This document shows, piece after piece, positions 3,424 through 63,307 of a stretch of DNA of 64,000 bases (position 1 is the stretch's first letter; every line of letters begins with the position of its first letter). Source of the stretch: Lepidodermella squamata (Eukaryota; Animalia; Gastrotricha); NCBI GenBank assembly GCA_047495785.1, contig JBLDXI010000024.1, positions 4,526,001-4,590,000 on the forward strand, given 5' to 3'. The notes below the pieces were generated by a model. It ran no database searches, had not been told where the DNA came from, and worked only from the letters and a program-made list of their open reading frames with translations. The translations under genes were made by a program, and so were the position numbers.

Positions 3424-6400
3424 ATGGATTTATGGCCTTCTTTGATATTGCTTTTGGCAATAAGCTGCGGCAGTATGACGCAATCTTTTGTTATTCGACT
3501 TAAATAACCTGTCTTTTAACAGTTGTTGAGTGTCAATGCGACATGTCTTGCAGCAATGGTGGCTATTGCAAAAACAACCAGTGTTATTGCCCTGCTCCGT
3601 GGGGTGGAGAAAAGTGTGACGATTCAGGTAAAATGCCTCGCAGGCAGTAACGTTAAAGCTGACATCAATCATTTTATAGGGGTGGCCTACTGTTCATCTG
3701 CAGCTAGCGGGTCGCTTCCGCTATGCCAGAACGGAGGCACTTGTAATGGCAGTTGTATTTGCCCACCAGGATTCAGTGGGCGATTCTGTGAAATAGGTTT
3801 GATTTGATTTCAATCTGAACTCATCTTGCATTCCGTCATTTCACTAGTCCCATGCTCTCCAACCTGCCAAGAAATTTGCACTTCGCCGTGTAAGAATGGA
3901 GGGAGTTGCATTGCCCAAGGTAAATGTTCCTGTCCCGCTGGATGGACCGGGCCCACTTGCGAGACCTTCACATGCCCAGCAGGCTGTTCGAATGGAGGCA
4001 CGTGCGTTGGACCTGACACTTGCGCATGCACTGCTGACTGGAAAGGCAATGACTGTAGGACAGGTAACATAACGTCGTTCAGATAGCAACACACTGAACT
4101 CTACTGGATGTTTCAGCTGTCTGCTTGCTGACTTGCGTAAACGGAGGATCATGTACCGCTCCAAACGTATGCACTTGCGCTCCGAAATGGATGGGTTCAA
4201 CTTGCAACACGCCTACAAACGACAGTATGATTTTGACTTTGTCCATTCGAGATGCACATTTCTGGGCCCGCTCATGTTTCGTCCAGGCGCGCTCTCCCAT
4301 TGCTTGACAGGTCACGCATATCCCTTCAGAAGTGGCTTTTCGAAAAAAAATCGGTTTTTAGACCAAAATAAAATTTGATCGATTCTTTGTCGATTGAATA
4401 TATGGTTCTCGTTCGAAAAATGAAAGGGATTTTTTACCTGCACTCAAAATTTGCGATCGAAATAAGCGCGCTCACAATTTGTGTTTTTGTACGCGACATT
4501 TTGGGCGCACATAAAAAAATTTCCTCTAATTTTTTCGAACAAGAATCCATAACCAAGCGACGGAGAATCGCTCAAATTGTATTTTGGTCTAAAAACCGAC
4601 AACATCTTTGAAAAATCACCTTTGAGGTTTTATCCTTGGTTTTATCGCGCAGCAAAACAAGAAGAAGGCAAAACTGCGCGCACGCTCAAGTCAAAGCCAC
4701 GCATTTTAATTCGCGATGAAACTGTTGCTTGCAATAATTTGAAGGTGCTTTTCAAAATAATTCAAAACCTTTTGCTAAAATGACTAATAAATTGATCAAA
4801 AATATGATACACTTGTTTTAGCTTTAGACTACTGTGGCTCATAATTATGCGCGCGCGCGCAATGATTGCGCAACAGGCCTTCACACATGCCAGCCAAAAT
4901 GCGCGCGCGGACGAAACACTGGCGAGCCCGGAAATCCGCATTCGGGATAGGTAATACTTTAATTCTTTATTCAAGTGTGCAGCGCTAGTATCCCATGCGC
5001 AAATCGCGGCACGTGTAACAACGGTCTCTGCTACTGTGCCGAATCCTATACAAACACTGATTGTTCAACGACCGGTAAAATGTCCAGCGTATTGACAGTT
5101 CAGATTTGCAGTTATTTAATCCGAAGGAACTGATGTCTGCTCATCAAATGGCGTCGACTACCCTTGGTGTTTAAATGGTGGCACATGCGACTTTACCGGC
5201 TCGGCCACTAAATGTAACTGCCCTCACGGAGTGAGTGGCAAGTATTGCGAGACCGGTAGGAACCCGCCATTTTGTATATCAAATTTAAATATAATAATAT
5301 TTCAGTTCTTAACCGTAAGTTTTGTTCACTGCTCCCAAGTAATTAATGAAGGAATATGCGATGCAGAATGTGACAGTGACGACGTCACTCTCAAGTACAG
5401 GGGTTGGGGAGGTAGCATTTCCGCTTCTTCTGGCAACGCAGCCGATGCTCTAACAACAGGCGGCTGGGTGCCTGCGGCCACTGACCGAAGGGTGTTTTGG
5501 CAGCTAACCTTGCCATTTGATTTCACGATTTCGACCATCGAAGTCGGATCAGGCTCAAATGCTGTGGGCTATGTGACAAACTATGCGATTTCCTTCAGCG
5601 TGAAACAGAAATATTTTGGGAGTTATTATTACCCTTTTCTCACAAGTTTCGCTGCTTGGAATAATCCCGTTCAGGTGCGCCTGCTTACTGATACGAGAAG
5701 ACGAAATAATATGAATCCTTCTAGATTTTTCCTGGGTTCAATGGAACTGCAGCGGGAGTTTCGGAACTTTGCCCAAATATAAGAACTTCTGGCTTGCGTC
5801 TTTGGCCTAAAAACTTCTCCGCTTCGCCTTATGCAATGACAATCAAGATTTATGGCTGCCAGGCGCATTCCGGCTGTGTTCTTTCTGGGTCCGGGACGTG
5901 CAAAACAACTTGCACGTGTCCAGCTGGCTATACTAGCGGCACTGGTTCAAACTGCGGTAAGGGTTGATTTCCATTGAAACCCTCAATTCCGAACCCATAT
6001 TCAGGTCCTAACGCGCCGGTTCCTAATTCCTAATTTTCCTAATTTTTTCACTTTTTTGGTAATATTTTATTACATAATTCAACGGGTACATTTATTCACG
6101 TAACGGACAACTAGGAAGGGAAAATTCAACCGCTCGATTTATTCACTGGGTTAACGATGAAGGCCTCATATCTCACGGGGTGCTATTACCACTCCTATTC
6201 TACTCCGCTCATAGTTGGATTTTGGAAGCAGAATCAGCAAAAGCTGTTTTGTTCGTCGTGTAATCATGATATCTTGCATTATTCTGTCCGTTACGGTAAA
6301 CCTTGAATTCAATTTCTTTGACTTCGCACAACATCTGGGAAACGCTATAGCCGGATAATCAATTCAGTATAAAGCATACCTCACACATGGCACCACGTTT

Positions 6401-9400
6401 TGCCAGATGCAATGTTTTTTCAAGGTTTCACACCTATGAACGGACAGACATGCGGTGACGTAACGGACAGACTGTGAGCGTAACGGACAGAGACACAACT
6501 CAAGACAGACTGACTACTCGAGAGAAAAGAGCGGAACACCATTGGTCAGAGCGCGAAGTACGAGGGAGGGGGGAGGGCTATCGTACCCTCCAGTTCGGCA
6601 GGCTAAAGTGGAAAATCCCCGAAAAATCCACAGGGGGACCCTTTTTTAATCACGGTATGGCGTGAGCTTTCTTCGGAAGCCAAGCTTTCAACAATTGTTT
6701 ACTGAATTTTGTGAGTCTCTATAGTCAATAGAGGTTTCTATTCGACTATATAGTCTCGGTGGAAAACGCCATTACTTTTTGCCTGTGGTCTGTGGGCATT
6801 AGCAAAAAAGACACAAACCAACTCGTGATTCACAAGACACAACTATGCGCATGAATCTGAACCAGAACACAGCATGAACCTTGCGCATGAATCACATAGG
6901 TGGCTATAAGATGTCCAAACCAAAAGTAATGGTGTTTCCCACCGAGAAACCCACTGAGAAACCTCAACAAATTGCCAATATTCGGGAAGAAAATCGTTCA
7001 AGGTCACGCCATACCCCGATTAGATCCATCGTCGCGTCCGATCACTACGCGCTTACGGTTACTACGCGCACAGCCACGTGACGTGGAGCCTCAAATTTGA
7101 CTTTCCAGTGATTTTTTCGCATTGGAAATGCAACCCGTTTGATTACCAATTAGAAAACTTGAATAGAAATTGTGAAAAGCATTGCGAAACAGAGAGATAA
7201 ATGTGCGAAAATTTCCGACTTGACCAATGACACATTTTTAAATCTAGAAATTGCGCGGCACGATGAAAAGTGGGTTTGAAGAGAATATTTAAGCACAAAT
7301 TTTTATAGCGAATCTGGTCAACTGCGCGTTGAAATTTAACTTCTTTTATCCTCATCCGTATTGTCGCGTCTCATTATGCAAGCAATTTGGAGAATTAAGG
7401 TGAAATGGGAAAAATTCATTGGCCCCAAGTAGAAGCCTTACCCGCGCGTGATTTGCGAGCGCACACCCAACTTCGCTCGCGTAGAAAATGCCACCAATAA
7501 GGCCGCCGAAGTTTCGTTATTTTCTCCGCTTGTAGCAGTTTGTACTTCGCTCTCCGAAGAGTTCAGTCTCCGAAGTAGTTTGTCACCGCTCTACATATTA
7601 CAAAACCCTAATAATTTAGAAAAACTGAATAGATATTCTCCTCTTCAGATGCATGGACCATGTCACCAATTGATTGCGAAGACATTTTGGCGCGTGATAA
7701 CACGAAACAGGACGGTTCTTACACAATATACCCGCCGTCATTCTCAGCAGTGTCAGTTTACTGCGCGATGAGCATCCTCGGTGGAGGTTGGACTGTATTT
7801 CAACGCCGCCTAAACGGCTTGGTTGATTTTTACCAGACTTGGGCGAATTATAAGGCTGGCTTTAGCACGGGGGTGACCGAATTTTGGCTTGGGAACGATA
7901 ATATCAACCGTCTCACGTTTCAAAATTACAATTCATTGCCGCTACTTGGTCTCTACATGGTTGCGGCTGACGGTGATCGCGGATTTGCTATTCACAAAGA
8001 ATTTTATCTAGACGACGAAGCTAGCAATTATACACTTCATATTGGGTCGTTTGAAACCGGCAATGCAGGTGAGTATTGATACTCGCCCTAATTATTCTGA
8101 TGGATAATTTGGAACCAGGCGACTCGTTAATCTACCATAACAACCTCCCGTTCAGTACTTATGACCGAGACAACTCGATGTATTCAAACTGCACGAGCGC
8201 ATACAGAGGCGGGTGGTGGTAAGCTTTACTGCGATTGATTCTTTTCAGACGATCTCCCCGATCTTTTCCAGGTATGGAAACTGTCTTCATTCCAATTTGA
8301 ACGGGTTAGGCAAGAAGGTTATTCAAGTTTTCTTCGGACGTTTGCATCGTTCTGTCTTCCAGATTATATGGCTCAAGCAATTGGGGCCAAATGATATGTC
8401 ATAATTCTTTCAAAGGCTTCACGGTTGGGATGACGACCGCTATGATGATGTATAGACGAAACAATCCCATGGAAGTTTTTCCATGTGAGTAGTTTATCTG
8501 TGTTGAAGGTCTATCAATTCAACGCTTTGATTCAGATCCACGTTCCCTCACGCCAGTCGACTGCGATGAAGTGTTGAAAGGCAATCCGTTTTCGAAGAGT
8601 GGCACTTTCAACGTCTATCCCGTGGGGTATACCAGCCCAGTACTCGTATACTGCGAAATGGCTGCCCAGGGTGGGGGTTTTACAGTTATCCAGCGCAATG
8701 CAAACTACAATTTCAACCAATCGTGGTCTGTCTACGTGGCGGGTTTCGGCACCTTGACTTCCTCTTTCTACCTTGGCAATGACAAAATGTACAAACTCGT
8801 AAACCCGCAAACTGGATTGCAGTTTCAACTGATCATTACTTTGGAAGACAACACTGGCATGAAGCGAACGGCAGCTTACAACTCGTTCAACTTACTGGAA
8901 AACGTCAACTACACTTTATCGATTTCAGGCTATCAGTCTATTGCCAGTGATAATGCCGGGGATTCGCTTACAACATCGAACAATCAGCCGTTTCAGACGT
9001 ACGACCAAGCTCAAGGTCGAGTTTGCGGACCTAAGCGACCAGGTGGCTGGTGGTTCAAAGTTCCAACCAACGGGGACTCGGTCAATCCTGATTGTTCCGA
9101 TGCGAATCTCAACGGACTCTTTGGAGGAAATACATGGGAAATGGGGCAGTTCTGGAACTCGTTGACAGGCAAAAATAAGTCGCTAACCTCAAGCACAATG
9201 ATGATCAAGCCCTGTAATTTATAGAAGACCTATGAAATTCGGCAGAATTCGGGAGTTTCTTTTTCAGATACTGCTAAGCCCATGGATTGTATGGACGTGT
9301 ATAAAACGAATTCGTTGGTCTCCGGGGTTTTTTGGATTTATCACCCGGTTGCTGGCCCATTGCAAGTTCTCTGCGATCCCTCGATCTACTTTACAGGGAC

Positions 9401-12400
9401 GCCCGGCTGGACTGTGAGTCTAGCAAGTTCTTGGTATATTTTCGTTAATTACTAGCCTATAGGTGATTCAAATACAAGTTTACAATACCACATCTTTCGC
9501 GAGAACATGGTCGGACTACAAAACTGGCTTCAGATTTAGCCCGTTCTCTCAGACAACTGACTATTGGATTGGTAAAACTTCTAACATCGCATTCATCCAT
9601 TTGTTATTTTTTCCGTATAGGTAACGAGAACTTGTACAAACTGACGAAAGATGCAGCCTATCAGCTGGTGGTGAGAGTGGGGCTGACTAACGGCACGATG
9701 TTGAAGGCGTTCTACAGTGACTTCCAAGTTAGCAGCGAGACTTATGGCTATGGACTTTTCGTGGGCAGCTATCAAGGAGATGCTGGAGATATGCTGACCG
9801 CTAAGCACAATAACATGCAATTTTCAACGTACGATCAAGGCCCGGCTTATCTCTGCTTTTCGAACTATAAAATCAGCGGCGGATGGTGGCTGCCTGCAGA
9901 CTGCTCATTCGACTCGAATGCAAACAACAAAATGTCTTCAAGCGACGTCAACGCCACGCTAAAATGGGGTACGTTGTCTGTCAAAACGTTTTTGATGGCG
10001 ATTCAACGGAAACAATGGCGTAAGTTGCGATTACTGAACGCAATGAGACGTGTAATATCTCAAATTTTTCAGCCAACGTTAAGAACATTCCCAACGCGAA
10101 ATCACGGCTTATGTCTCCGACTTACGGAATTGTCATGTACGACTGTAATAAAAACTTTCAGGGATTCGACAATGGGGACAGAGTTTATTCTGCGACTTAT
10201 GGAATATATTCCAGCAACAGTTTTGTTTGCAGTGGTAAGTTTTCTTATTCTCACATCGCGATGACAATCAAACCTGTTTTGTAAACAGCTAAGGCCCCAG
10301 CCCAGGACTGCAACACCGCTTCGAGTGGCGCGGGAGTGAATTCATTCTTCGACTCCATCTCAGGCACTTCCTACTCCGTTTATTGTGACCAGGAAACGTT
10401 GGGCGGGGGCTGGACTGTTATTCAGCGTCGGATGAATAGCTTGAATCCCTTTTCTACTTCCTTGAGTAATTACGAATTTGGGTTCGGCGTAATAACGGGC
10501 GATTACTGGGTGGGAAATTCAATAATTCGATCGATGACTCAGGCCGCTGATTACGAGCTGCTGATAGAAATCGGCCAGGATAACAGCTGGGGCTTTGCTT
10601 TGTACGGAAATTTCTACATCACGTCGACTTATAACAATCTGAACGTGTCTGGATACAACAATGTCTCAACTGTGGGAGATTCCTTGACGCCTCTGTCATC
10701 TCTACCTTTCATCATCGATCCTTGCGGAGCAGGTGGTGGTTGGTGGTTGGCCCAACCTAGCTGCTCGCTAGCTAACATTCAAAGCAACCTGAACAATTAT
10801 CTGGTAAACCAAACTCAAGGCTACATGAACAGTTACTGGAGAACATTCAGCTCAGTGGCAAGTGCACCTCTAACACATACCGAAATGAAAATTAGGCGCT
10901 CCACGAGGGGAAGTACTATGTTTTCATACATTATGGCGCCGAATTATCAATGCAGTCCTACTACTGGCTCTTCGTACACCTTTGAAAACCTTACCTCAGT
11001 GTCGATGTGCACGGCTGCTTGCACCTCTTACAAAGCTTGGAACTGCCAGCTTGTGATCTTCAATAGACTTAATTTTTACTGCACTATGAAAAGCGACTAT
11101 TGCGAGCCCGGCATTGGATCTGTTTTCACGGATGTTGATTCATACTATCGAAACGAGCTGCCGAACCATGTCTCGAAAAGTTGCGGTTTCCCGCCAGCAA
11201 TTAGAAATACGAATCGCCAGATCGTGGGAATGCCAACTGTCATGTCGGTGAATTACACCTGTACCGTTGATATTACAAAAACCACAGTGCTAACATGCAA
11301 CGCTACGACCAAGTTATGGACTGGCAATTTCCTGGTTTGCCCGGATTGTTCGGGCATTGGGAAGTGTATGAATGGAGGCGTGTGTTACGCCACTAACACC
11401 TGCCGCTGCGCTCCAGGATGGACAGGTACAACATGTACCGTACAGACGAGTGATTGTTCGGCCATCGGATCATGCTTCAATGGCGGTTCCTGTATTGGTG
11501 TTAATGTTTGCCAGTGTTTACCTGGCTGGAACGGAACGAACTGCACGATACGTAAGTTCGAACTCTTTCGCGAACATTATCTTAAAGAGATTCAATTTAT
11601 TTTCAGCATCGTGTTCTGCGATTGGGGGATGCCAGAACGGAGGATCCTGTGTTGCCCCCAATTCGTGTACATGTTTTGGAAACTCGACCGGCATTGATTG
11701 CTCTGTGCTAACGAACGTAACAGATTCGTGTTCTTCGATTGGCGGATGCCAGAACGGAGGGTCTTGTGTTAAGACCGATACTTGCGCCTGTATTGGAAAC
11801 TGGACCGGCATTGACTGCACTGTGGCAAAGAACGGAACGAATTCGTCATCATCATCATTGTGTTCTTCGATTGGCGAATGCAAGAACGGAGGGTTCTGTA
11901 TAAAGCTAGATACTTGTGCATGTTTTGGAGGTTGGACTGGCAAGGACTGCTCTGCAAAAATGAACAAATCAGATTCTGCTGTTTCGATCGCCTCTCTCGT
12001 TGACCTGCCGCCTCAGGTCCTAATCGCTGCGGCTGCTTCAATCAGTACTATGGCGCTGGAAGCTTCTGAATCCATCACTTCTACAGAGAACGCAACAGCC
12101 ATGGCCGCAGCGTCTACCGCTTTCATGGCTGGAATGGCCCCCGTTATGGGTAAATACGCTGAAGTAGCAGCTGATATGTCCCCTGCAGCTGTGACGAACG
12201 TCACAATGGGTTTTGCTTCTGCAACGAGCTCTGTTATGTTTGCCGTGTCTGATGCTGTCGAAACAACAAGCGGATCTACGACACCAGCTCCGTCAGATAA
12301 AACGAATAAATGTAAATCGGTAACAGTGGCATCTGATGACGATGAAGAATCACCTGCTCCTACTGCTGTCCTTTCAACTGACGACGTAAGTTGTTGTCGA

Positions 12401-15400
12401 GATAAACCATGCTTGTATGAATAAATTTATTGTGTTAAAGACGTCTAAGCTGTATGGGAACTTCAATGAAATGGTTGAACAAATGCTGAAAATGGTCGAA
12501 ATCAACGTGAAATCCGGCAAAAACTTCACGTTCAACGGGAAATTTTTCTCAATCGCACTCAGCGTCGTTGATATGAGAACGTTGGCAAAGTTGAAGATCG
12601 AAACCATTCATGCCTCAGTGGAGTTTCCAAACACGACATCAGCAGTTGAATTCATCGATTCAAAAGCTTCGCAGGTTAGCCTTAAAGATTCTGACACTGT
12701 CACGGTTGCTCTTACGGCCTACATCGTCAATGTCCTCGATCCGGATCAACCATTCAACCTGCCGACAATTTCAGTCAAGGTTCTCTATCAGAAGAAAGAG
12801 CTAGTTCTAAAGAAAGGCTACGCCACTAAGATAACAGGCAAACCTTCTGCAACCCGAACAGCAAAGCTGAGTGGCCAAAAATCGGAGTCTCAGTGCGTCG
12901 TAAGTGAGATGAAATGCGATGTCACTGCGAATGCTGATGCCATAGGATCGCTGGCGCTTTTCCCAGTCTCTACGGGTTCAGGCGATTTCATTTTGACTTT
13001 TCCGACCATCAGATACAACTATACGGCTTATCTTTCCCTTAACAGTACCCCCACTGTCAGAAACTACACCTGGTCAATTTATGTAACTCAGAAAACTGTC
13101 AATTGCAGCGTTAATGCCACGCTTGGTGAACTCAAGTCAACCTACAATCCAGAAGTTGAATTGAGAGTGGTCATCCCTCAGACTGCTCTATTCGATTTCG
13201 CTGAATTGCAAGGACTGTCTTCAAGCGAAAATGTCACTTTCAAGCTACATGTTTACACTAAAAAAGACTTTTCAAGTTTCTCGACTATGGACGACCTGCC
13301 AGCAGATGCTTGCGAACTACAGCGATGCTACGGTTACCACCTCAAGATAGGATTCGCTAGGGCAAAATCAACAAGTTCAAGGAGAAGACGCGATGCATCG
13401 GGTTCAAGCTCTGATGACGATTTTGAGGTCGACCCCAGTTCGAATGAATCAGCCGTTGTCTTCAAATCTTCCTACTTTGGCGATTTTGGGGCCGACCTTG
13501 TGGTGTCACCAAATTCAATCGAATTTTCGGATATTTTCGCCAATTTCGCTACTCTCGTATCAGATAATGCTTACGTCCTCGCTTTTCAAGTTGCCGCTGT
13601 GGTCTTTTGCATCATTGGCATTATTGTTGTCAGCCAATTTGATAAGCTCGACATCAAGGAGTGGGCTTTCATGTCTCTGAAGAGCAACAAGCCGTACGAA
13701 GTGCATAAATATCTCGTTTCCGTCGATCATTTCGGCGTTAAAAGCTACCACCTGAAGCCTGTGGTCCTACTCCGAGCTTACGGTGATATCAGCGACACGA
13801 ACTGGCGCGTCCTTGAAGATTGCGAGCGAGATTCAAATTTCAACGGCAAGCGTCCAGCTAATTTCATGTTGACCACCACCATGCCGCTCGGCCACATCGA
13901 GGCAATCGAAATTAGACTACACAGCCGATACAGGGCAGCGCCAGGCAATAAGCCACTCGAGATGCAAATTGCCAAAGTGGTTATAGTGGATGTTGCGAAA
14001 AGCCAAAAATTCGTGTTCTTAACCAAGTCGCCTATGAAAAGTGGTGACATGGTGTCTAAGCAGCTAGCATCTGAGGATGACATTAAAGGCTTCCGATATC
14101 TGGTCAGCGCTCATTCTCGAGTTGGCGTTTTCAGCTCTCACCCTTGGCTATCGATCGCGAGGCGTCCTCTTCCCAGCAACTGGACCCGATGCGAACGGCT
14201 GGCTTGTGTAACCAGCGCTCTATTCATGGCAATGCTAGTCAATGCGATGTTCTACGGGAAGGAAAGTCAATCGCCCCGGGTTGGCATAAAAATCGGGGGA
14301 TACTTCCGCCTGTCCTGGTTCACAGTCTACACAAGCTTCATCGGATGCGTCATTGTCATCCCTCCAACTGCAATTATGGCCTTCATTTTCAAACGAATCA
14401 GACGTCGATCAGCTGAGAATAGCCAGTACACCACGATATTCAATGTTGCCCTAGGATTCCGACAAAGAAATCCTGACGACAAAGAAAAGAAGCCCTTCCA
14501 GCTTCCTTATTATTTCGCAATTGTCGCATGGTTTTGTAAGTCAATAAGTTTAACATAAAACAGCACTCCATTTTCTTCTTTTAAGTGGTTGCTGGGTGCA
14601 TCGGGGCATCATCTTTCTTCATCGTCATGTACAGTTTGATGTGGGGCAAGGAGAAGTCTCTGCAATGGCTTAGCGGGATGATCATGAGCGTTGTTCAAGA
14701 CATAATCATAATCCAAACAGTCAAGGTCGCGCTGTTGTCTCTATGCAGTTCAACTTTACTATCCCTTCCGGATGATGGTCTGGATATTGGCAAGATGGCA
14801 TTCTCCAAGAATAACTCTAGCAAGAAAACGGAGCTCTTCAAGCGCATGCGGAACATCATCGCAGGGATTTTCCACCACATCATTTACGTCGTGGCTTTTG
14901 CAATCGTAATCTCAGCAACGCAAAACACTCTAGCCTATCAGCAAGTTGGCGATTTGAAGCCACTCGTTGAGATGCCTACTGTACCTCAGATGGGCGTGAT
15001 TAATGACTACAGCCAGATTTATTCATGGTTGAACAACAATCTGTTGCCACAGTTTTTCACTGCGAACCAGCTGAAAAAGGGCCTGAACTTCAACCTGAAA
15101 AATATCTACCAAGTTCTAAATCACGACGTCGTGGTTCTTGGTCCAGTTCGCTTGCGACAGCAACGAGTTCAACCTTGTAAGCACGACCATGAAGAATGTT
15201 GTTGAGAAATTTTCATTTTCTTGCAGATTATTGTCCCTTGGAGACGTCGCCAATACCACTGATCAATCAGAAATTCACCAAACTGCTCATTTTGAACACG
15301 ACGAAGTGCCAAAATCCATATGTTGACCAACTTGGTATCGGCGAAACCACTGAACGGCGGCAATTTTCGAATTTATATTGGACCTTCAACGAAAGTATTA

Positions 15401-17090
15401 CAGCTTGGTTGGCTGAGAACGTCACGACTGAGCAGGCTCCGTGGATTTATCGAGAAGACAGCGGCATTCCTTACTCGGGATTTCAAGCTAGTTACTCGAG
15501 CGGTGGCTATTACGTAGACCTCCCAGTCACACTTAAAAAAGCGAGGGCGTTCGTCACTCAGCTCCAGTCGAGAAGATGGCTGGATAACGCAACTTCAGTC
15601 TTGTTTGTTGACATGGTCCTGTTCAATGCTCAGGTCAATTTGTTCATCGCTGTCAAAGTGGTGTTCGAAGCCTTAAGTGCTGGAGGTATGACCTATCACG
15701 CAAGAATGTACCCTCTGCAGCTCTATCAATACATCGGGGCTAGCTCGATCTTCGTTTTCGCGATTCAAGGCATCTGGATCTTGCTGGTCATCTCGCATCT
15801 GATTAAGATTTTCATTCAGATGAAAAAGCAAGGAATCACAAAGTTCCGAAAAGATGGATGGAATTTGCTGGAGCTGTGCCAGATATTGATATCCTTGGCC
15901 ATCGTTGGATTGTTTATAGCTCGAATTCTGGTAGTGATGAAGGCTGTAACCCGGCTTCAGACCGACCGAACTTCATTCGTGAACTTTGATCTTCTGGTCA
16001 ACTGGGAAGCTTTGATGGCTAACCTGTATGGAATCACATTTTTCATGACGATGCTGCTGTTTTTCCGCCATCTCACCTTCAACAAGTACTGGTGCATCTT
16101 CTTGGGAACGCTCTCCAAGGGCAAGGCGGATATATATTCATTCCTGTTCACTTTCGTCATCATCACACTGTTGTTCGCCACACTGGGTTATCTGAGCCTA
16201 AATACGACGTGTGACGAGTTTCAATCATTCACTGCTTCGATTATGACCCTTGTTCAGAATATCATCGGAGTGACTGGGTCCTTGATGTCGCTGAGCTTTA
16301 CATCTCGTTATATCATGTTGTTCTGCATGGCTTACTCAACTATTGTCATGTTTTTGGCTGTTCAGGTCTTCATGACCATCATTTCGGTCACTTACAGCCA
16401 GGTGGCTGAAAACGCTGAAGAAAACACCAACTGGGACTATGAACTATCCGGTTACATGGCTGAAGAGATAACGCGTACTTTCGGCAAAGCTGAGGAAAAG
16501 AAGAAAAGAGCTGCGCCCATTTTCAGGCCTATCGGAGAGAGAAATCTGGCGAGATGTAAGCTGTTTCCTAAATTTTTGGCTTTTTATATCATTTCGCTCT
16601 AGTGGAAATGTCGATTCACCGTTTGTCGCGCTATGTCGAGTCGCGCGTTGCAGATGATACTATCGAGCGAGTTGCGAAACGCGATCGATGCCTCGTGCAC
16701 TGGATGGACATGAAATTGCGTGGATTACGGCTTCGCAAATTTATGAACACCGTTATGCGTCAAAAGCCAAAAGCCACCAACGCACCTGCGAAGATTGAAG
16801 ATCCGAAGATGTTCAGGCATAGTGGCAACATTGCCAGTCAACGAGGTCATTTCACTGAAAAGGCCCATCCACGTCGAATGTCTGAGCCCTTCCCTCAAAA
16901 TTGGGTGTATCACATGCAGTCTGGTCCGGATGCTAAGCCATTCGTCAATCCTGGGAGAAAGTCGCTGTTTGGCATAGTTCTCCCGAGTAACAAGCAACGT
17001 GGCAGCTTGCCAGTTGGTTCTCTGCTTGGAACTTACGATCTCAAGAAGCAGGGTGGCGGAAATCGACTAAATCCCCACCCCGCGCACTAG
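3424..17090 (+). CDS. Polycystin-1-like receptor/channel subunit A (multi-exon): SP-EGFx~7-F5/8C-EGF-like-FReDx3-degenerate CCP-FReD-PAN-CCP-EGFx5-GAIN-like-TM1-PLAT-TM2-5-polycystin channel (6 TM)
   Basis: Leader exon [16 protein letters not shown] (3424-3472) and phase-compatible GT-AG exons. FReD motifs YC.M...[10 protein letters not shown]...FWLGN...GGWW; '[15 protein letters not shown]' before TM1; PLAT; '[15 protein letters not shown]'; TOP-domain motifs '[11 protein letters not shown]', '[10 protein letters not shown]', '[15 protein letters not shown]'; stop TAG at 17088-17090. Confidence 0.9.
4251..4942. mobile_element. Nested MITE-like inverted-repeat elements in a gene A intron
   Basis: Inner IR tcggtttttagaccaaaataaaatttga (4351) / tcaaattgtattttggtctaaaaaccga (~4599); outer degenerate IR atttctgggcccgctcatgtttcgtcc (~4258) / ggacgaaacactggcgagcccggaaat (~4909). 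Confidence 0.6.
7649..10900 (+). CDS. Gene A: four tandem fibrinogen C-terminal (FReD) domains (approx. 7649-8484, 8536-9212, 9269-10019, 10289-10900)
   Basis: Each repeat begins P.DC and contains GWTV(F/I)Q, (F/Y)(W/Y)(L/I/V)GN, AGD/VGD and GGWW motifs. Confidence 0.92.
12441..16600 (+). CDS. Gene A: GAIN-like stalk, TM1, PLAT, TM2-5 and polycystin cation-channel domain
   Basis: ORFs 12417-14558, 14585-15205 and 15196-16602, joined by ~50-nt introns; hydrophobic segment pattern and motifs typical of the PKD1 family. Confidence 0.92.
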
Positions 17091-49639: not shown

Positions 49640-51199
49640 AAACTTTTTACTCTTTCTTTATTTTTTTCTATTTTATTTTTATTTTTTTATTTTTTTACTT
49701 AGTAGATTCTATCTAATAGAATAGTTTTAATTGGATGCGACGAGCGGCTTGTGGCGGCTGGGCATATACGGCGTGCCCAGCATGTAGTGCGTGCCCGGCT
49801 TACTAACGCGGTGTGCGCGCGCCCTGTTGCGTAACTTTTGAGACTCACAAAAGCGGACTAACACGCGACACGAACTCAAGACCATCAAGTGATATCGTAA
49901 TTGCGAATATGCAAATATACACACTGAGCGGCTTACCTTTTCATGCAAAAAGGGGTGATGATATTGCCGTTGAATGAGTACTCTGGTTTCCGCGCAAAAC
50001 GTACAAATCTTTCGCCTTTTACTAAAGATTTCCGTGCGTGGGAACATTCAATGAGCCTTCGGGCGATTTCTTGGGCTTCTCCGATGAAGAGAAGCGAAAT
50101 GACACAAACAAACATCCGTAAATTGCATTCGAATCACTCAAACACTCTCTAGAATGCGTGACCTGCTTTTTCACTTGTCAAGATCTGTAGTAAGAGTGAG
50201 GCAGAACCAACGCAGCTGACAAATGAAAACTGGCAACTATTTTAATTCAATTTATCTCAAATGGCGATGTCTGCCCTTTTCTTTAAATATTGTTACCATT
50301 GTAGTTTCGATCATAGGGTATACACAGGCAAGCTATATTCGCCCAGCCTTAATTTTCTATATTAAAAATAAAGCAGAAAATAATGCAAGAAACTTTCAAG
50401 CTAGGCACCGGGCTACATTTATTATTTTATTGAAAACTACACAAAACTTGATGTTAAAATATTTTCAAAATGTTTTTGTTTTTTTCTAAGGGATGACCAG
50501 ACTTTTTTTTATGAAATTTCCGCAGTATCGCAATTCAATTAATTTGCCAATAATTATTCCTGTAATTTTTCTATTTTTTTTCACGAATTTTTTCACGAAT
50601 TTTAAATAAAATTAAATAAAATTTTGATGAAAACCTGCGATTTTCAAAAATCGGTTTTTTTAATTCTTTTTATCGAGAAGTGATGCAAATGCCATAATGT
50701 GATCGAATATCGGCCGCGCCTATTAATCTGAGAAATTGCGATTATACAGCATTCTAGCGTTTTCAGCTACTTTTTTGGAAACTTTTACCTTTTACCTGTT
50801 GGAGCAGCTCTGACGCAACTATCGGCGAAGCATAGAAAGATATCGTATCCATGGCTATCAATATTCAATATCAATAGCATCAATTTTACTCATGAATCGG
50901 CCCTCGTTTTTACTCGAAAACAGTCCAAATTAAATTTATAGTGAAAAATCAGGGTGAAATCGTAAAATTTCAAAGAATTTCAAGAAATTTCAAGATAATC
51001 AATTTAAGAAGAATCAAGTTGTTTCGAGTATGTATTATGAATTTCTGAACAGGGTTTTGATCGAAAAAAGATTAGACCTGCGGTTTTCCAGAAGTTGCAC
51101 ACATATTTTCGATTTGGCAACTTTTTGTGGGAGATTAAGTCACATTTTTTTATATTGAACCCACTGAGGATACCATCTTTTTTCCGCGATTAAAAAAAA

Positions 51200-52025
51200 A
51201 TGGAAAAATTTCCGGAGAAAACTCGGAAACTCCCAATTAAAGCGTCCGTAAAAATGACCACGTCGATCATATGGGCGACCGTCTGCCTCCACAACTACCT
51301 CATGTCGAGCAAAAGTGAAATTAACGAAGAATTCCTAACGTATTGTTGCCCGTCGTTCGCTGATCGAGTAGCCAGAGACATCGAAATCAACGGCTCTTGG
51401 CGCGAAGTGATTGCTGGAGACGATCCCGAAAACCCTGGCCTCGTACCGCTTCAGCACGTCGGGAATCGAGGCTCGCGTGATGCCGTCGCGAATCGAGAAA
51501 CATTAAAAAAGTTTTTCATTTCGGAACATGGCGAGGTCTACTGGCAATACAAATCTATCAGCATTGGGTTGACAAATCGGCTCACCGTTTCAGACGAATA
51601 TCGCCAATTGGCGAACGATTCAATGAATTGATCAAAACAATTGGATAATTTGAAACTTTAATTTTGGGAAATTAATTTCACGAATAGAACATTTGCTCAA
51701 AACTTAATTTATGTGAGCCATCTATGATAAAAATGTGTTTAACTGCGCTTAAATAAATAGTTTTTGGTACCACAACGTAGCTCTCCAGCTCATTAATAAG
51801 ATTTTAATGCCATATCAAACTAATCGCGCATCATTAACAAGATAAGAAGGGGTTAAATAGCATCAACGCGCACATTACTCATTTTCTTAGGTATTCATTT
51901 ATGAATGTTTTTTTTACGCGCTGCTTAAGCAATAGGTATTGCTGAAACCGCCATTGCTCAATGCCCAATGCCTATTGCTCATTGCTCATTGCCTATTGCT
52001 CAAGGTAGTCATTTGTGCGACAGCC
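51200..52025 (+). mobile_element. PIF/Harbinger transposase C-terminal fragment (5'-truncated), with a possible right terminus at ~52025
   Basis: IIWATVCLHNYL...YCCPSFAD...GSWR...N...A...RETLKKFFISEHGEVYWQ matches the HARBI1-type DDE C-terminus; ...tgtgcgacagcc|tta resembles a Harbinger end. Confidence 0.8.
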
Positions 52026-52878: not shown

Positions 52879-55800
52879 ATGGGAATCGAGATTCTGGGTT
52901 TTTCCCTAATCTTTCTGTTCACCTCAAGAGCTGTCGAAGGCCGTTAGTGTTTTGGAGGCGGGTAACATGCCTTCGATTTCTTTTCTTTTACAGAAACGTG
53001 TACCCCAACTTGCCAGAATGGCGGGAGTTGCGTGGCTCTGAATACCTGCAGCTGCGTGGATGATTGGACTGGACCTACTTGCACAACACGTTAGGCTTCA
53101 TTCATGCTTTGATGAGTTGAAATTCAGATGCTATTCAATATAGTTACACCTTGCCAGAATGCTGAACTACTTTCAAAGCTTGCCTCTTGGGGAGGTTCCA
53201 TATCAGGATCAACAGGGGTTCCCGCGAATGGTAACGGGAATCTACCAACTGGCAACTTTTGGCAGCCAACCGGTACAGAATCGAACATTTACATCGAATT
53301 CAATTTTGGCCGCGAGGTTTCGGTCAAAACTATCGGCATCGCAGCAGGCTCACCATTTATCGGCTATATCACGGCGTATACTCTATCCTTCCTAGCTAAA
53401 GCCGGACTTGGCGAGTTGATGGTTCCTGTGCTTACAAATATGTCAGATCCTAACAGCGCCCCTGTGATTTACAGCACTTCCCCAAACGCATCAAACAACA
53501 CGTATTTCTATCCAACTACTCTCTGTCCTGTTGTTCGTACGCAAAAGCTAAGAATTCATGTTAAAATCGGATCGGGAGCTCTGACCAACATTCGTTCTCG
53601 GTTTTTGATCTACGGCTGCCCAACTTATGCTGGATGCACAGTTTGCTCAGCAGGCAGTCAATGCCTTTGCCCCATAGGTTACATCAGCAATGACACAACT
53701 CTGAATCCATGGCCTCATTGCGGTAATTTATTGTTTCGCAATATCACTGTTCCTATCGCATCCATTTTTCAGACCAACTGACTTTGCCTGTTTTGGACTG
53801 CGAGGATATCGCGATGCGCCAGCCTAGTGCTCAAAGTGGTGTCTATACAATTTATCCGATCGGATCTCCGCCAATTCAGGTGTACTGCGATATGACATCG
53901 CTCGGTGGGGGCTGGACAGTTTTCCAACGCCGTGCATCACCAACAGTGGATTTCAATCGAAACTGGGTCGATTATCAGTCATTTTTCGGATCATTCAGTG
54001 ACAGCTTTTGGCTTGGCCTAGAGAGCATCTCTGCTATTACTAACACGCCTTATAATACCTATAAACTGACTATCAAAGCATCAGATTTGGACTTCAATTA
54101 CAACGGCCTTCACACATGGAGGGGCTTCAGAATTAGTCCTGCTGCTAGCAATTACGCTCTCACTTATACATCGGTTGGGATCGGCAATATGGGAAACAAT
54201 TTAGCGAACGCTCAGAACAGACCATTCAGCACTAAAGATCAGGACAATGACAACGTAGGCGGGTATAATTGTGCTCTTACCAACATGGGAGGCTGGTGGT
54301 ATGGCACTACATGCAGTGTCCCAACCTTGAATGGGTATATAATTCGAGAAATAAGTATAATGAAATTAACTCTGGGCATTCCAGGATTTACAACTCAACC
54401 GTGGCTTATCAAGGCGTTATGTGGAGTCCATGGGTTACATCGGGTTTCTCTCTGAGAAAGGCGCAGATGATGGTGAGAAGGCAACAAAATGACTTATTCG
54501 GAACCCCAGGTAAGTTCTAATAGAACCACTATCAAGGTTAAAGTTTCCCTTTCAAGCTGTTGCATTAACCTATACCAACCCGGCTGATTGTTCCGACATT
54601 GCGGTTAACATGCCTAATGCACCGAGTGGAGTCTACACAATCTACCCACCTGGCGGTAACCCTGTCCAAACATATTGTGAAATGGTGGCTTTTGGCGGGA
54701 ATTGGACTGTTATCCAACGAAATATCTATGGATCTCCTCAAAGCTTCAACCAAAACTACACAACTTACGAAACAGGCTTCGGAAATCCTAATGAGGCTTT
54801 CTATCTCGGAAATACTGCAATAAACCTACTAACTTCAGCTGGGCCTCTATACCAAATGGCTGTTGTACTTGAATTTGGTAGTGGCACTTTCGGAACTGCG
54901 AGGTACATGACTTTTTCGATAGACGGAGCCGCGTCCAATTACAAGTTAAATGTTACTGGTTACAATTGGCTGGATGATGTTGAAACCGCAGGCGATTCGT
55001 TACTCTCGCACTCTGGGCAAAGTTTCCAAGTTTATTCTAATAGATCGGGAGGCTGGTGGTTCAAAGACTGGGTTTCTGGGTCGTGCCTCGATTCAAATCT
55101 GAATGGAGTAGCCCTGAATGACACATTCGAGCAAGGAATAGTTTGGTCTTCCTGGAAAAGCCGGGTGAATTCGATCAAAAACAGTGTCATGATGATTCGG
55201 CCACTGGCTCTGAAACCTTACGATTGCTTGGATATATTCACGAACGACAACAGTAGTCAGGATGGTTTGTATTGGATATACCCCATTGGAATGAAGGCCC
55301 TTCGAGTCTACTGCTATTTCGGGGCACTTCCTTACATATCGAACACAACAGATTATCGTGGCATAACGGTATGAATAAAGTATTGACAATTTTGCCAGAT
55401 TCATAGGAATACATTTTTCACAGCTATTTCAAAAGCGAACGGCTGGAAATGTGAATTTTTCAAGAAATTGGCAAGATTATAAATGGGGATTTGCTGCACA
55501 GCCGTTCACAGCTTCCGGTGATTATTGGCTTGGTACTTATTAATACTCTCATCAATCATAAACACATCGTAGTTTGATAGGTAACGAGAACCTTTATCAG
55601 CTGACTCGGAGGCAGTGCAATGAACTTTTCATCATGACAACTGATCCCCGAAGTGGCGAGACTATTGCGCACTGGAAGGATTTTCAAATTGCATCCGAAG
55701 ATAACGGATATAGATTGTACGCCGATCCAGGAACATTTGATACTGCTTCAAATACAGGTAAATACTGAGTATTCATCGATCTTCAGGTTGAATATAGCCT

Positions 55801-61800: not shown

Positions 61801-63307
61801 ATGTGTCATCTGATGACGCGCCGTGGAGTTATCGCAAGGATTCCAACGGAGTTCTCTACTCGGGCTGGTCTGCTGACTATAAAACCGGTGGCTACTACGT
61901 CGACCTACCTTCAAAAATGTGGAGGGCCAAGCAACTGGTAGCCAATCTGAAAGCTGGGAGATGGCTTGACAACTCAACTTCAGTCCTATTCGTCGATTTT
62001 ATCTTGTACAACTCACAAATCAATTTGTTTTTGACTGTGAAAGTCGTATTTGAGGCCCTGTCAGCCGGTGGGATGAACTACCACACGAGAGTTTACCCGC
62101 TACAACTGTACCAATACTCTGGGGCTAGTAGCATTTTGATCTTCATAATTCAAGGCATTTGGATAATACTGCTGATATCTGTGACTATCAAAGCTGTTTA
62201 TTCAATGAAAAAACATGGGCCTAAACAGCATTTGAAGGATGGTTGGAATGTATTGGAACTTGTCTCGATCGCCATAGCTTACGGCATTGTCGGTCTCTTC
62301 GTTGCGAGGATTTCTAGCATTATCAAAATGATCAATAGAATGCAGACTGATCGATCATCCCACACTAATCTCGACCTACTGGTCAATTGGGACGAAATAA
62401 TGGCTAACCTCTACGGCTTGACCTTCTTCATGACCATGATGCTGTTCTTCCGAAATCTGAAATTCAACAAATATTGGTGCATGTTTTTGGCTACTTTATC
62501 GAGGGGTAGGAATGACCTGCTTTCATTTATCATTGTGTTCACCATCATCACAATGATGTTCTCTGGCTTGGGCTATTTGACTCTTGGGGCAACTCAAACC
62601 GAGTTCAGATCGGTAACAGCTTCAATAATGACCCTACTGCAAAATGTGATCGGTGTAACTGGGACTTTGATCTCCCTCGGCACAAAGTCTCGGTTGATCA
62701 TGATCTACTGCATCGCCTACTCTTCGATCGTAATGTTTTTAGCTGTCCAGATTTTCATGACCATCATAACTGTGACGTATGATCATGTTACTGACGACGT
62801 TGAGCATAACACTAACTGGGACAAAGAGGTGTCGGAATACATGGTCAAGGAATTTAAGAAGTTGATAACCAGAAAGCAGTCTAAGGAAGATATAGGAATC
62901 GACCTGTTAGTTAATGACAGCTCCTTTCCCGAACGTAAGTATAACATTGATGTCTCAAAATTTTTTAACTAACCCTTACATTTGCAGTTGATGAAGCATT
63001 GAATCGGCTTTTGCAACGTGTCGACGCCGTTGCGAAGAATGCTCCACTCATCGAGGAGGATAAACGAGTTGCGTGTAACATCCGCTGGGCCGAGCAGTAT
63101 CTCAGCCTATCGCGCGCAAAATCTGCGAAGCCCGATGTCCGACAACCCTCGGCAACATTCACTATAACGTCAGACGAAGTTGGAGCCCGGCGTCCTAAAA
63201 AGATTCCAAAACGAAGACCTTCAGTTGAACCCATCTTCACGGCAAGACTACCCGGTGGCTTCGCCTATTATGAGTTTCTCAGCCGGTTCAGTGAGCACAA
63301 CGTTTAA
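52879..63307 (+). CDS. Polycystin-1-like receptor/channel subunit B (multi-exon): SP-EGF-F5/8C-EGF-like-FReDx3-degenerate CCP-FReD-PAN-CCPx3-EGF-Thr-rich stalk-GAIN-like-TM1-PLAT-TM2-5-polycystin channel
   Basis: Leader MGIEILGFSLIFLFTSRAVEG (52879-52942); phase-compatible exons. Membrane half is collinear with and strongly similar to gene A ([45 protein letters not shown]). Stop 63305-63307; AATAAA at ~63535. Confidence 0.9.

Follow-up and report, generated by a model that had tools for sequence, protein, structure and literature searches.

A predicted polycystin-1-like protein with four fibrinogen domains in the gastrotrich Lepidodermella squamata

The REJ-module relatives of polycystin-1 (PKD1) act as receptor subunits, for glycans or ligands outside the cell, and are paired with PKD2-type channels; their authors defined the family by a REJ module some 600 residues long. 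In Ciona, a PKD1-like gene (s-Themis, of sperm) and a fibrinogen-like gene (v-Themis) form a pair on opposite strands of one tight locus; the fibrinogen-like protein, a separate ligand, is encoded within an intron of the receptor gene, and the B-type s-Themis receptor carries a PKD channel (PMC7018956). Gene A, which lies in a 64,000-nt stretch of Lepidodermella squamata DNA (the window), shares with the REJ-module proteins a lectin-type ectodomain, a GPS region, PLAT and up to 11 transmembrane (TM) segments. However, those proteins have C-type lectin modules, PKD repeats and a canonical GPS, whereas Gene A has FReD (fibrinogen), discoidin and PAN modules and was found to lack REJ. It is very probably one intact, lineage-specific receptor or channel-like subunit of the polycystin-1 (PKD1/REJ/PKD1L) family, in which a conventional core is joined to a shuffled ectodomain of adhesion and lectin-type modules.

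The coding sequence (10,104 nt, 3,367 codons or amino acids) runs on the plus strand from an ATG at 3424 to a stop at 17088-17090 without an internal stop, and 3,367 stop-free codons cannot have arisen by chance. It is divided among 24 exons by 23 introns, all of them GT-AG and 20 of them 47-58 nt long; those among exons 2-7 measure 52, 51, 53, 751 (4225-4975) and 52 nt. Eighteen of the 23 are in phase 1, a pattern compatible with assembly by exon shuffling. Open stretches of the longest listed intron (Table 1) have no Pfam match. The encoded order is signal peptide, seven EGF, discoidin, four FReDs, PAN-like, CCP, five EGF and an Ala/Ser/Thr stalk, followed by a core made of GAIN fold, TM1, PLAT, TM2-5, polycystin domain and a 6-TM PKD channel. 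The first-pass annotation had proposed this chain of exons with phase-compatible junctions: every module is present in the order it gave, the PAN domain with weak support, and the junctions are borne out by the stop-free 24-exon reading frame and by GT-AG at every intron. Two introns that it placed at 11551-11608 and 12387-12440 do exist, but their true bounds are 11552-11606 and 12386-12440 (55 nt each).

Table 1. Features of Gene A along the window.
Feature	Position	Strand	Basis or remark
Exon 1: start codon and signal peptide	3424..3472	+	hydrophobic residues 2-24; 50-nt GT-AG intron to first EGF, in frame
Exons 2-7: seven EGF	3523..5255	+	Pfam EGF/EGF_2/hEGF; exon 2 EGF by eye
Exons 8-9: discoidin (F5/8 type C), then EGF-like Cys-rich tail	5340..5956	+	Pfam and paralogue profile
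Intron, 1,692 nt, phase 1	5957..7648	+	without coding signal for Gene A
FReD1 (exons 10-13, residues 464-688)	7649..8484	+	Fibrinogen_C E 4.3e-32, N half
FReD2 (exon 14 alone, complete, residues 689-914)	8536..9213	+	Fibrinogen_C E 3.3e-36, HMM 3-220/221
FReD3 (exons 15-17, residues 915-1132)	9268..10019	+	Fibrinogen_C E 4.8e-16; C-terminal (P) subdomain degenerate
Exon 18: 54-residue Cys-containing linker module	10073..10234	+	in frame between two phase-1 introns
FReD4 (first part of exon 19, residues ~1187-1391)	10289..10902	+	Fibrinogen_C E 1.4e-23, HMM 26-145 only; P subdomain shortened
PAN/apple-like	10936..11181	+	weakly supported
CCP/Sushi	11182..11340	+	profile A2 vs C4b-binding protein CCP E 1.4e-6; also DAF, factor H
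Five membrane-proximal EGF, across intron 11552-11606	11341..11974	+	Pfam EGF_2/EGF_Teneurin/hEGF
Ala/Ser/Thr-rich mucin-like stalk, end of exon 20; then intron 12386-12440	11975..12385	+	A22 S16 T15 of 108 residues
GAIN fold (exon 21 residues 1-356)	12441..13508	+	AF2 model pLDDT 85 and fold matches
RRRR polybasic (R-X-K/R-R) motif in GAIN loop	13380..13391	+	~30 residues before GPS-equivalent position
TM1	13575..13640	+	strongest hydrophobic segment, score 2.98; aligns with human polycystin-1 6a70_B TM1
PLAT/LH2, first cytoplasmic loop	13659..14075	+	fold match; aligns with PKD1 PLAT
TM2-TM5 and TM6 (=S1), across intron 14536-14585	14199..14995	+	hydropathy; TM2-3 align to PKD1
Polycystin (TOP) domain, across intron 15177-15226	14996..15723	+	Pfam Polycystin_dom E 2.2e-5, 6.4e-22 (two exons)
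PKD channel S2-S6 and pore loop	15739..16404	+	Pfam PKD_channel E 5e-23
Cytoplasmic C-terminal tail, intron 16556-16602, stop 17088-17090	16405..17090	+	

The modules of the ectodomain differ in how readily they are recognized. As a single sequence the discoidin domain scores below the Pfam cut-off (F5_F8_type_C, E 0.002, 18.7 bits), and a paralogue profile (A5) compared with the PDB matches factor V/VIII C domains (E 1e-16) and neuropilin b1 (E 1e-13). The C half of FReD1 is split among three short exons and was recognized by reading the sequence (it includes ...MMMYRR), while the top PDB match of FReD2 is tachylectin-5A (E 9.5e-23). We take the ligand residues of tachylectin-5A to be the aspartates of its Ca2+ site and the Cys-His of its acetyl pocket; by alignment these are not kept in FReD2, and by eye they are lost in FReD3 and FReD4 and partial in FReD1. 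The earlier description of these domains as ficolin/FREP-like binding modules therefore holds at the level of the fold but not of the ligand residues, and because the ligand-binding residues of well-studied FReD lectins are mostly unconserved, glycan binding would be a guess. The linker encoded by exon 18 has no Pfam match at E<=1. For the PAN-like region, a profile (A2) matches the N-terminal region of PDB 6ryv (E 1.6e-3), a chain that presumably carries a PAN domain, and the ESM-Atlas neighbours are PAN/Sushi clusters (scores 0.81-0.87); Pfam PAN_3 (E 0.0066) is found in the Gene C copy only, and the AF2 model is poor (pLDDT 45). The CCP pattern of four Cys, a Trp and YxC is conserved in the paralogues and in a metagenomic relative (L001), and the EGF units on either side of intron 11552-11606 are about 48% identical to each other. 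Pfam detected no PKD repeat (PF00801), REJ (PF02010), LRR, WSC or C-type lectin domain in any exon of Gene A, with the scan of the juxtamembrane exon relaxed to E up to 1, and profile-profile comparison likewise gave no PKD repeat or REJ, in agreement with the first-pass annotation.

The 356 residues ahead of TM1 are entirely GAIN fold. In VIA-align the model matches CD97 (Z 10.6), CELSR1 (Z 10.5), Gpr126 (Z 9.0), latrophilin-3 (Z 8.3) and BAI3 (Z 8.1), all of which span model residues 1 to about 355. In the alignment, the GPS-equivalent strand (13467-13496) has neither HL/T nor either of the two Cys, and since these are absent, a domain with this sequence cannot cleave itself at a canonical GPS. 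The RRRR motif is conserved in all seven clade members (Gene A, Gene C, P0001, P0002, P0003, P0005 and P0081) and its loop is disordered (pLDDT <50 at exon 21 residues 307-323). Such a conserved R-X-K/R-R, placed in a loop of the GAIN fold that is exposed, points to a furin-type convertase that may cut here in place of GPS autoproteolysis. The loss of HL/T and the conserved furin-type RRRR in the adjacent loop are new details for Gene A.

Beyond the GAIN fold the core is conventional. Exon 21 aligns with human PKD1 over the stalk, TM1, PLAT and TM2-3 (E 1.2e-11). The PLAT region as a single sequence has no Pfam match, and its fold matches the PLAT domains of 5-lipoxygenase (Z 14.5, rmsd 1.9) and pancreatic lipase (Z 14.4). 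Hydropathy peaks for TM2-TM6 lie at residues 2454, 2499, 2561, 2598 and 2656, and hydropathy and homology together give 11 TM segments. The channel matches PKD2L1 (E 2.3e-42), PKD2 (E 1.7e-40), PKD1L3 (E 2.6e-26) and PKD1 (E 1.6e-12) in the PDB; its filter position reads IIGVTG (16261-16278), with GV aligned opposite the GD of PKD2L1. The C-terminal tail has no Pfam match. On a tree of the core, Gene A falls in a divergent PKD1-like clade that is separated from its Lingula and mollusc relatives with full support, and by this tree it is not a PKD1 orthologue. The polycystin-1-like identity assigned at first is thus upheld as membership of the PKD1 family. The accompanying idea of a wholesale ectodomain replacement survives in part: alternative modules do sit on a PKD1-family 11-TM protein, but in a gene that is not a PKD1 orthologue they need not have replaced a canonical PKD1 ectodomain.

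Two adjacent genes could be present instead, one for a secreted EGF/discoidin/FReD/PAN/CCP/EGF/mucin protein (3424 to about 12424), the other a PKD1-like core gene starting in exon 21, with frames compatible by accident. The same FReD/PAN/CCP cassette does occur with no PKD core in Gene B, which lies between Genes A and C and is read from the other strand, and retention of intron 12386-12440 would lead to a stop at 12422-12424 and a plausible secreted product. Against this, spliced exon 20 has no stop, the junction intron is a 55-nt GTAAGT...AG typical for Gene A, and exon 21, despite opening with the extracellular GAIN fold, lacks both a signal peptide and a hydrophobic N-terminus. The sole RNA run is very sparse: no read or contig bridges the FReD4/stalk/core junction, pieces upstream of 13.1 kb are few and resemble paralogue fragments, and confirmation is limited to intron 15177-15226, which one contig skips as a 50-nt GT..AG. 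Gene C (52.9-63.3 kb) is a tandem paralogue with discoidin, four FReDs, PAN/CCP, EGF, a Thr-rich stalk at the position of the Gene A stalk, and a core; it repeats the adjacency, strand, order and frame compatibility despite only 47-55% identity between the cores, and both of its stalk junctions offer GT-AG introns of compatible phase. In each of the closest relatives, which come from metagenome contigs (L001/L002, L003, L004), an ORF whose last part shows a CCP-type Cys/Trp pattern lies directly upstream of the core, in the same orientation (with profile support in L001 only), and in L001 a 59-nt phase-1 GT-AG intron joins this ORF to the core in frame. These database proteins do begin near the GAIN domain, as separate core genes would, but they are ORF-based calls by a prokaryote-style gene caller on intron-containing eukaryotic contigs; such core-only calls fit the splice explanation without proving it. 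Given the shared layout of Gene C and the CCP exon upstream of the core in the metagenomic relatives, we infer from reading frame and comparative anatomy that Gene A is a single gene with one transcript across FReD4, stalk and core, and consider two genes unlikely.

A decaying, non-functional duplicate within a large, recently expanded family would also account for some observations: the family is in tandem, many related contigs occur in the DNA run (depth over the core is about 10-fold higher, and 168 of the 348 contigs are no more than 90-95% alike), and the PLAT, GAIN and FReD3/4 sequences have strongly diverged. Yet these domains have kept confidently predicted folds despite their divergence (pLDDT 85), the 10.1-kb coding sequence has no stop or frameshift, all 46 splice dinucleotides are intact, and there is some RNA signal over the core, including the correctly spliced intron. 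We regard a pseudogene as the least probable of the alternatives, with very little chance of being correct.

For an intact receptor, a possible mechanism can be outlined. Phase-1 exons for adhesion and lectin-type modules would have been shuffled together into an ectodomain on a mucin-like stalk, whose FReD and discoidin domains may recognize a ligand outside the cell, probably a glycan or else a molecule of the matrix or cell surface. The signal would reach the membrane core by way of the GAIN/stalk region. Because the pore loop is without an acidic filter residue, the core would most likely act as a single PKD1-type subunit in a heteromer with PKD2-type subunits, as has been proposed for sea-urchin REJ proteins (C-lectin-bearing PKD1 relatives of sperm) and for vertebrate PKD1L3/PKD2L1.

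A more specific role would be that of a Themis-type receptor for self/non-self or gamete recognition, with FReDs mediating recognition between it and the tightly linked fibrinogen-like partner, Gene B. As in Ciona, PKD1-like and fibrinogen-like genes share a locus on opposite strands here, since two FReD-bearing PKD1-like genes (A and C) flank Gene B; lectin-bearing REJ relatives of PKD1 serve in sperm-egg recognition in sea urchins (PMC1934368), and the DNA contigs show clustered variant positions. These contigs may, however, be paralogues. Gene A carries its FReDs in cis, as part of the receptor, whereas Ciona has them on the partner only; Gene B lies between two receptor genes rather than in an intron, and the Gene A clade is not near any tunicate sequence among the matches examined. 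Such a role is very unlikely.

Human polycystin-1 (6a70_B) and Gene A both follow the 11-TM plan, and each has a TOP domain as well as a C-terminal half that is channel-like. Unlike human PKD1, Gene A has no LRR, WSC, CTL, LDL-A, PKD repeats, REJ or HL/T, and in its channel half it resembles PKD2L1/PKD2 (E 1e-42) much more closely than PKD1 (E 1e-12). The nearest named relatives by core (28-35% identity) are the 'PKD1L2-like' proteins of Lingula anatina and molluscs (P0006-P0013, P0016). Like Gene A, they have no REJ by Pfam (six of six scanned) and a non-canonical GPS strand, FKSNFFGSF, without Cys or HL/T (eight of eight aligned); unlike Gene A, they have no FReD in those examined, no conserved RRRR loop and a Pfam-detectable PLAT. 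Their ectodomains vary (MAM, fn3, CUB, kringle, CTL), and judging from these sequences variable ectodomains are the rule in the Lingula, mollusc and Gene A lineages and common in invertebrate PKD1-like proteins. The closest match in composition is 'PKD1L3' of Branchiostoma lanceolatum (CAH1271112.1, P0062, an automatic gene model) and a neighbour 91% identical to it (P0174), in which a PKD1-like core (GPS, PLAT, PKD channel) is likewise combined with F5/8-C, FReD and EGF; none of the matches is a FReD-bearing orthologue from another Branchiostoma species. It differs in having one FReD instead of four, a C-type lectin domain, a canonical GPS HL/T and a Pfam-detectable PLAT. Since it lies on a distant branch of the core tree, FReDs were probably gained independently in the two. 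The combination of discoidin, one FReD and a PKD1 core is therefore already known from B. lanceolatum, and a lectin-module ectodomain on a polycystin-1 core, while unusual, has precedent in a family of variable outer parts.

Gene A, a polycystin-1-like gene, lies in a eukaryotic window whose GC content is about 44% and whose introns are very short. Across the plus-strand open stretches between 3.4 and 17.1 kb, Pfam returned in order EGF, a weak F5/8 type C match, four Fibrinogen_C domains (E 4e-32, 3e-36, 5e-16 and 1e-23), further EGFs, a 722-codon stretch blank in Pfam, Polycystin_dom and PKD_channel. Exons were curated by hand against domain boundaries, with GT..AG pairs enumerated and the frame kept, giving a stop-free model of 24 exons for a protein of 3,367 residues, between an ATG at 3424 and a stop at 17088-17090. 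This model and its domain matches bear out the first-pass annotation, which had read a chain of exons with four fibrinogen-related domains (FReDs) into the channel region. Most introns are tiny (47-58 nt in 20 of 23; the remaining three measure 84, 751 and 1,692 nt), and 18 of the 23 are in phase 1, as expected of extracellular modules that have been shuffled. Pfam found no match in the open stretches inside the two long introns, which may have originated as insertions now reduced to mobile-element remnants. The 3.4 kb upstream of the start showed no recognisable additional coding exon.

Features of the window discussed in the text (positions in nt)
Feature	Position	Strand	Content
Gene A	3424-17090	+	polycystin-1-like gene with four FReDs
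Gene A, long intron	4225-4975		low-complexity or repeat-like, short open stretches
Gene A, long intron	5957-7648		low-complexity or repeat-like, short open stretches
Gene A, exon between FReD3 and FReD4	10073-10234	+	54 residues, two Cys, no family recognised
Gene A, RRRR	13380-13391	+	polybasic loop of GAIN
Gene B	~20800 or lower to at least ~29050, possibly ~37000	-	C-type-lectin-like, discoidin x3, FReD x5, PAN, at least 4 CCP; between Genes A and C
Open stretches that may belong to Gene B	29.7-37 kb	-	C-lectin-like and EGF
Open stretch just upstream of Gene C	51194-51628	+	145 codons, resembling (by eye) a C-terminal Harbinger/PIF-type DDE transposase
Gene C	52900-63304	+	EGF, discoidin, FReD x4, PAN/CCP x3, EGF, Thr-rich mucin stalk, PKD1-like core; stop near 63304

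Exon 21 encodes 698 residues, for which Pfam gave no match even at E 1. Searched against 1.84 billion representative proteins, the exon returned 978 relatives, essentially all PKD1-like, and it aligns with human polycystin-1 (6a70_B) over the stalk, TM1, PLAT and TM2-3 (E 1.2e-11). Its AlphaFold model, built with 56 homologues, has a mean pLDDT of 85. Residues 1-356, that is, all of the exon before TM1, model as a GAIN fold and match adhesion-GPCR GAIN domains at Z 8.0-10.6 (CD97 10.6, CELSR1 10.5, Gpr126 9.0, latrophilin-3 8.3, BAI3 8.1); the low-complexity stalk lies upstream of them. In the loop after TM1, residues 407-545 superpose on the PLAT domains of 5-lipoxygenase (Z 14.5) and lipase (Z 14.4) with an rmsd of about 2 Å, a fold that Foldseek also matched and that Pfam PF01477 did not detect in the single Gene A sequence; the region aligns with the PKD1 PLAT. 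The calls of "GAIN-like" and "PLAT" originally made by reading the sequence are therefore correct at the level of fold.

The REJ module (PF02010) has been named family-defining (Gunaratne et al., 2007). No Gene A exon matched it in Pfam, exon 21 included at E<=1, and the same search found no PKD (Ig-like) repeats (PF00801), LRR, WSC or C-type lectin in any exon. A more sensitive test compared, with hhalign, an alignment of the pre-TM1 region of the Gene A clade (Genes A and C with their closest metagenomic relatives) with REJ+GAIN sequence taken from four PKD1L2 proteins of the canonical type, in which Pfam recognises REJ at up to E 1e-82: 41 columns aligned, at a probability of 4.8%, all in the GPS/stalk part and none in REJ. 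The claim that Gene A lacks REJ and PKD repeats is thus upheld by Pfam for both and by hhalign for REJ.

Hydropathy and homology together give 11 transmembrane segments, namely TM1, TM2-5 and a six-TM channel-like unit, with peaks at residues 2246, 2454, 2499, 2561, 2598, 2656, 2937, 2982, 3024, 3069 and 3125; TM1-3 align to human PKD1. A further peak at 2887 was rejected as a transmembrane segment, as it aligns to the end of the PKD2L1 TOP domain. Both the Polycystin (TOP) domain (PF20519, E 6.4e-22) and the PKD channel (PF08016, E 5e-23) are present, and against the PDB the channel half matches PKD2L1 (E 2.3e-42) and PKD2 (about 1e-40) far better than PKD1L3 (2.6e-26) or PKD1 (1.6e-12). A PKD2/TRPP channel, with six TM segments, an acidic LGD filter and no GAIN, PLAT or TM1-5, can be rejected as the identity of Gene A, which has five extra TM segments, GAIN, PLAT and a GV filter. 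An adhesion GPCR was likewise rejected: GAIN is present, but the membrane part matches only PKD1/PKD2 and there is no 7tm_2 match. Canonical PKD1 orthology was rejected on the channel matches in the PDB and the core tree. An aspartate in the filter has an established role in PKD2 and PKD2L1 in the structural literature. Gene A lacks an acidic filter residue: the part of the pore loop that is ILGD in PKD2L1 is IIGVTG in Gene A, with GV in place of GD. As judged from sequence, the protein would fit a PKD1-type subunit that supplies one of four pore walls, not a homomeric channel.

Transcript evidence on whether ectodomain and core form one gene or two is sparse: the one RNA-type run (X1) shows the intron at 15177-15226 spliced out and leaves the critical FReD4/stalk/core junctions uncovered, and the small number of pieces that it has before 13.1 kb bear dissimilar flanks and look like paralogue fragments. 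Contigs of a second run (X2) pass through introns, so this run behaves as DNA. Its contigs sum to a depth about 10 times as great over 13700-16100 (PLAT to channel, up to ~1,400) as over 10100-12500 (FReD4/EGF/stalk, ~90-150), and about half of the contigs aligned to the window are only 90-95% alike; depth and divergence together suggest many close core paralogues or very high allelic diversity.

The case for a single gene comes from the gene model and from relatives. The junction introns are typical of the gene in size and sequence, and the frame is continuous. The two introns singled out in the first-pass annotation do exist, with corrected ends at 11552-11606 (given as 11551-11608) and 12386-12440 (given as 12387-12440), and the EGF array continues on either side of the first. 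Exon 21 opens with an extracellular GAIN fold and has no signal peptide. Gene C, a tandem paralogue, repeats the Gene A order (discoidin, FReD x4, PAN/CCP, EGF, Thr-rich stalk, core) and has phase-compatible introns available, although its core is only 47-55% identical to that of Gene A. In the closest metagenome relatives (31-46% identity), each core has directly upstream, on its own strand, an ORF whose end shows a Cys/Trp pattern of CCP type; the pattern was aligned for contig L001, and for L003 and L004 it was judged by eye. A 59-nt phase-1 GT-AG intron joins the CCP ORF of L001 to the core in frame. In both L001 and L002 the contig stops some 1.4 kb upstream of the core, inside a Thr/Ser-rich repeat. 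Two adjacent genes, one carrying the ectodomain modules and one the core, would have a precedent in Gene B, which has FReD, PAN and CCP modules and no PKD core in the stretch searched (down to 17.2 kb). On balance, it is quite likely that Gene A is one gene from ectodomain through core.

The core has lost the motif for autoproteolysis at the GPS, which consists of Cys pairs and HL/T-S. Pfam found no GPS in Gene A, where SSYF occupies its position: canonical members align as C-x-C-x-HLT/S-FG and Gene A as K-S-S-Y-F-G-D-F-G, with neither the Cys nor HL/T. The motif is absent from all six clade rows of the alignment, as it is from the Lingula and mollusc relatives. All seven clade members have R-X-K/R-R about 30 residues before the GPS position, in a GAIN loop modelled at pLDDT below 50 in Gene A. 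The motif reads RRRR in Genes A and C, and the same column is furin-type in Gene C and in the clade proteins P0001, P0002, P0003, P0005 and P0081; the Lingula and mollusc proteins, also without HL/T, lack it in the alignment. It is possible that convertase cleavage at this putative site replaces autoproteolysis. Genes A and C show that REJ and the GPS self-cleavage motif, often taken as hallmarks of the polycystin-1 family, are dispensable throughout a clade, and a lost GPS beside a conserved furin-type site offers a natural test of whether separation of N- and C-terminal fragments, by whatever protease, is essential to signalling.

In the ectodomain, the discoidin domain scores 18.7 bits as a single sequence, under the Pfam cut-off; a profile built from the window's paralogous copies reaches E 1e-16 with factor V/VIII C domains and E 1e-13 with neuropilin b1. 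The FReD fold (A, B and P subdomains) is present, with four PF00147 matches. FReD1 is spread across four exons; FReD2 is a single complete exon (Pfam HMM 3-220 of 221) with tachylectin-5A (TL5A) as its best PDB match (E 9.5e-23); FReD3 and FReD4 match partially (HMM 75-203 and 26-145), their C-terminal subdomains diverged or shortened. In TL5A numbering, the Ca2+ site reportedly involves Asp198/Asp200 and the acetyl pocket Tyr210 and Cys219-His220 (Kairies et al., 2001). Aligned with TL5A, FReD2 has A at D198, a gap at D200, R at Y210 and S at H220. Read by eye, FReD1 retains D198, Y210 and the pair of Cys but has Leu at His220, and the TL5A ligand-site motif is absent from FReD3 and FReD4. 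The Ca2+ site and acetyl pocket of fibrinogen-related lectins of the ficolin, tachylectin-5A and FIBCD1 type are thus not intact in Gene A, and the binding specificity of its FReDs therefore cannot be inferred.

Two small Cys-rich modules directly follow FReD4. The second is a CCP, whose paralogue profile matches C4b-binding protein (E 1.4e-6) as well as DAF and factor H. The first is perhaps PAN-like: its profile gives E 1.6e-3 against the N-terminal part of PDB 6ryv, taken to be a PAN domain, and its language-model neighbours are PAN/Sushi clusters. An AF2 model of the PAN/CCP piece from four sequences reached a pLDDT of 45 and was left out of the fold search, the profile-versus-PDB search being used instead. 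After the CCP come five EGFs and then an Ala-, Ser- and Thr-rich stalk about 140 residues long. In the metagenome contigs L001 (1-1398) and L004 (1-921) a CCP likewise comes before the core, preceded in L001 by a long Thr/Ser-rich tract and in L004 by a non-FReD domain of about 200 residues; ectodomains therefore vary even inside the small Gene A clade.

The protein collections searched lack the window's own protein: the best long match is 42% identical, identities of 51-67% occur only in short fragments, and no relative exceeds 50% across the greater part of the query. Among named proteins, those closest to the core come from brachiopods and molluscs. In a quick maximum-likelihood tree (GPS to TM5), four metagenomic proteins join Genes A and C in a clade with full support, which groups with brachiopod and mollusc non-HLT proteins in a set with 98% support. 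Other invertebrate PKD1-like proteins examined have ectodomains with CUB/LDLa/REJ, kringle, MAM/fn3/CUB or C-lectin, so ectodomain variety is normal in the family. The module content first proposed for Gene A stands; to call it a wholesale replacement of the PKD1 ectodomain was an overstatement, as the ectodomains of the family were already variable. Among the 150 best relatives, one has a FReD, the Branchiostoma lanceolatum "PKD1L3" CAH1271112.1 (discoidin x2, one FReD, EGF, C-lectin, GPS, PLAT, channel), and a further search for PF00147 together with PF08016 found only this protein and a 91%-identical neighbour. On the tree CAH1271112.1 lies far from Gene A, inside the canonical-GPS group, which suggests that the amphioxus protein gained its FReD independently.

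On the prevailing view, proteins of the polycystin-1 type link recognition outside the cell to a TRPP channel, and only a minority of them have a known ligand. The recognition part of Gene A, four FReDs and a discoidin domain, could be screened as recombinant modules on glycan or protein arrays, and Gene A is therefore a tractable handle on what PKD1-like receptors sense. What is new here is a domain variant with four FReDs, no REJ, no GPS motif and a conserved polybasic loop. Many alternative ectodomains were already known in invertebrate PKD1-like proteins, as was one FReD in the amphioxus model, and the general picture is unchanged. No paper on polycystins that carry FReDs turned up in a search of the literature. 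Lectin-bearing PKD1 relatives are known from the sea-urchin REJ family, in which the REJ module is defining (PMC1934368), and at the self-sterility loci of Ciona the PKD1-like s-Themis is paired with the fibrinogen-like v-Themis on opposite strands (PMC7018956). In the window, two FReD-bearing PKD1-like genes flank an opposite-strand FReD gene, an arrangement that in its linkage is reminiscent of the Ciona loci. It is a long shot, argued by analogy, that Genes A and C with Gene B would form a linked receptor-partner system for gamete, allo- or microbe recognition, with GAIN autoproteolysis swapped for convertase cleavage at the RRRR loop, comparable to s-Themis and v-Themis in Ciona or to REJ and egg jelly in sea urchins.
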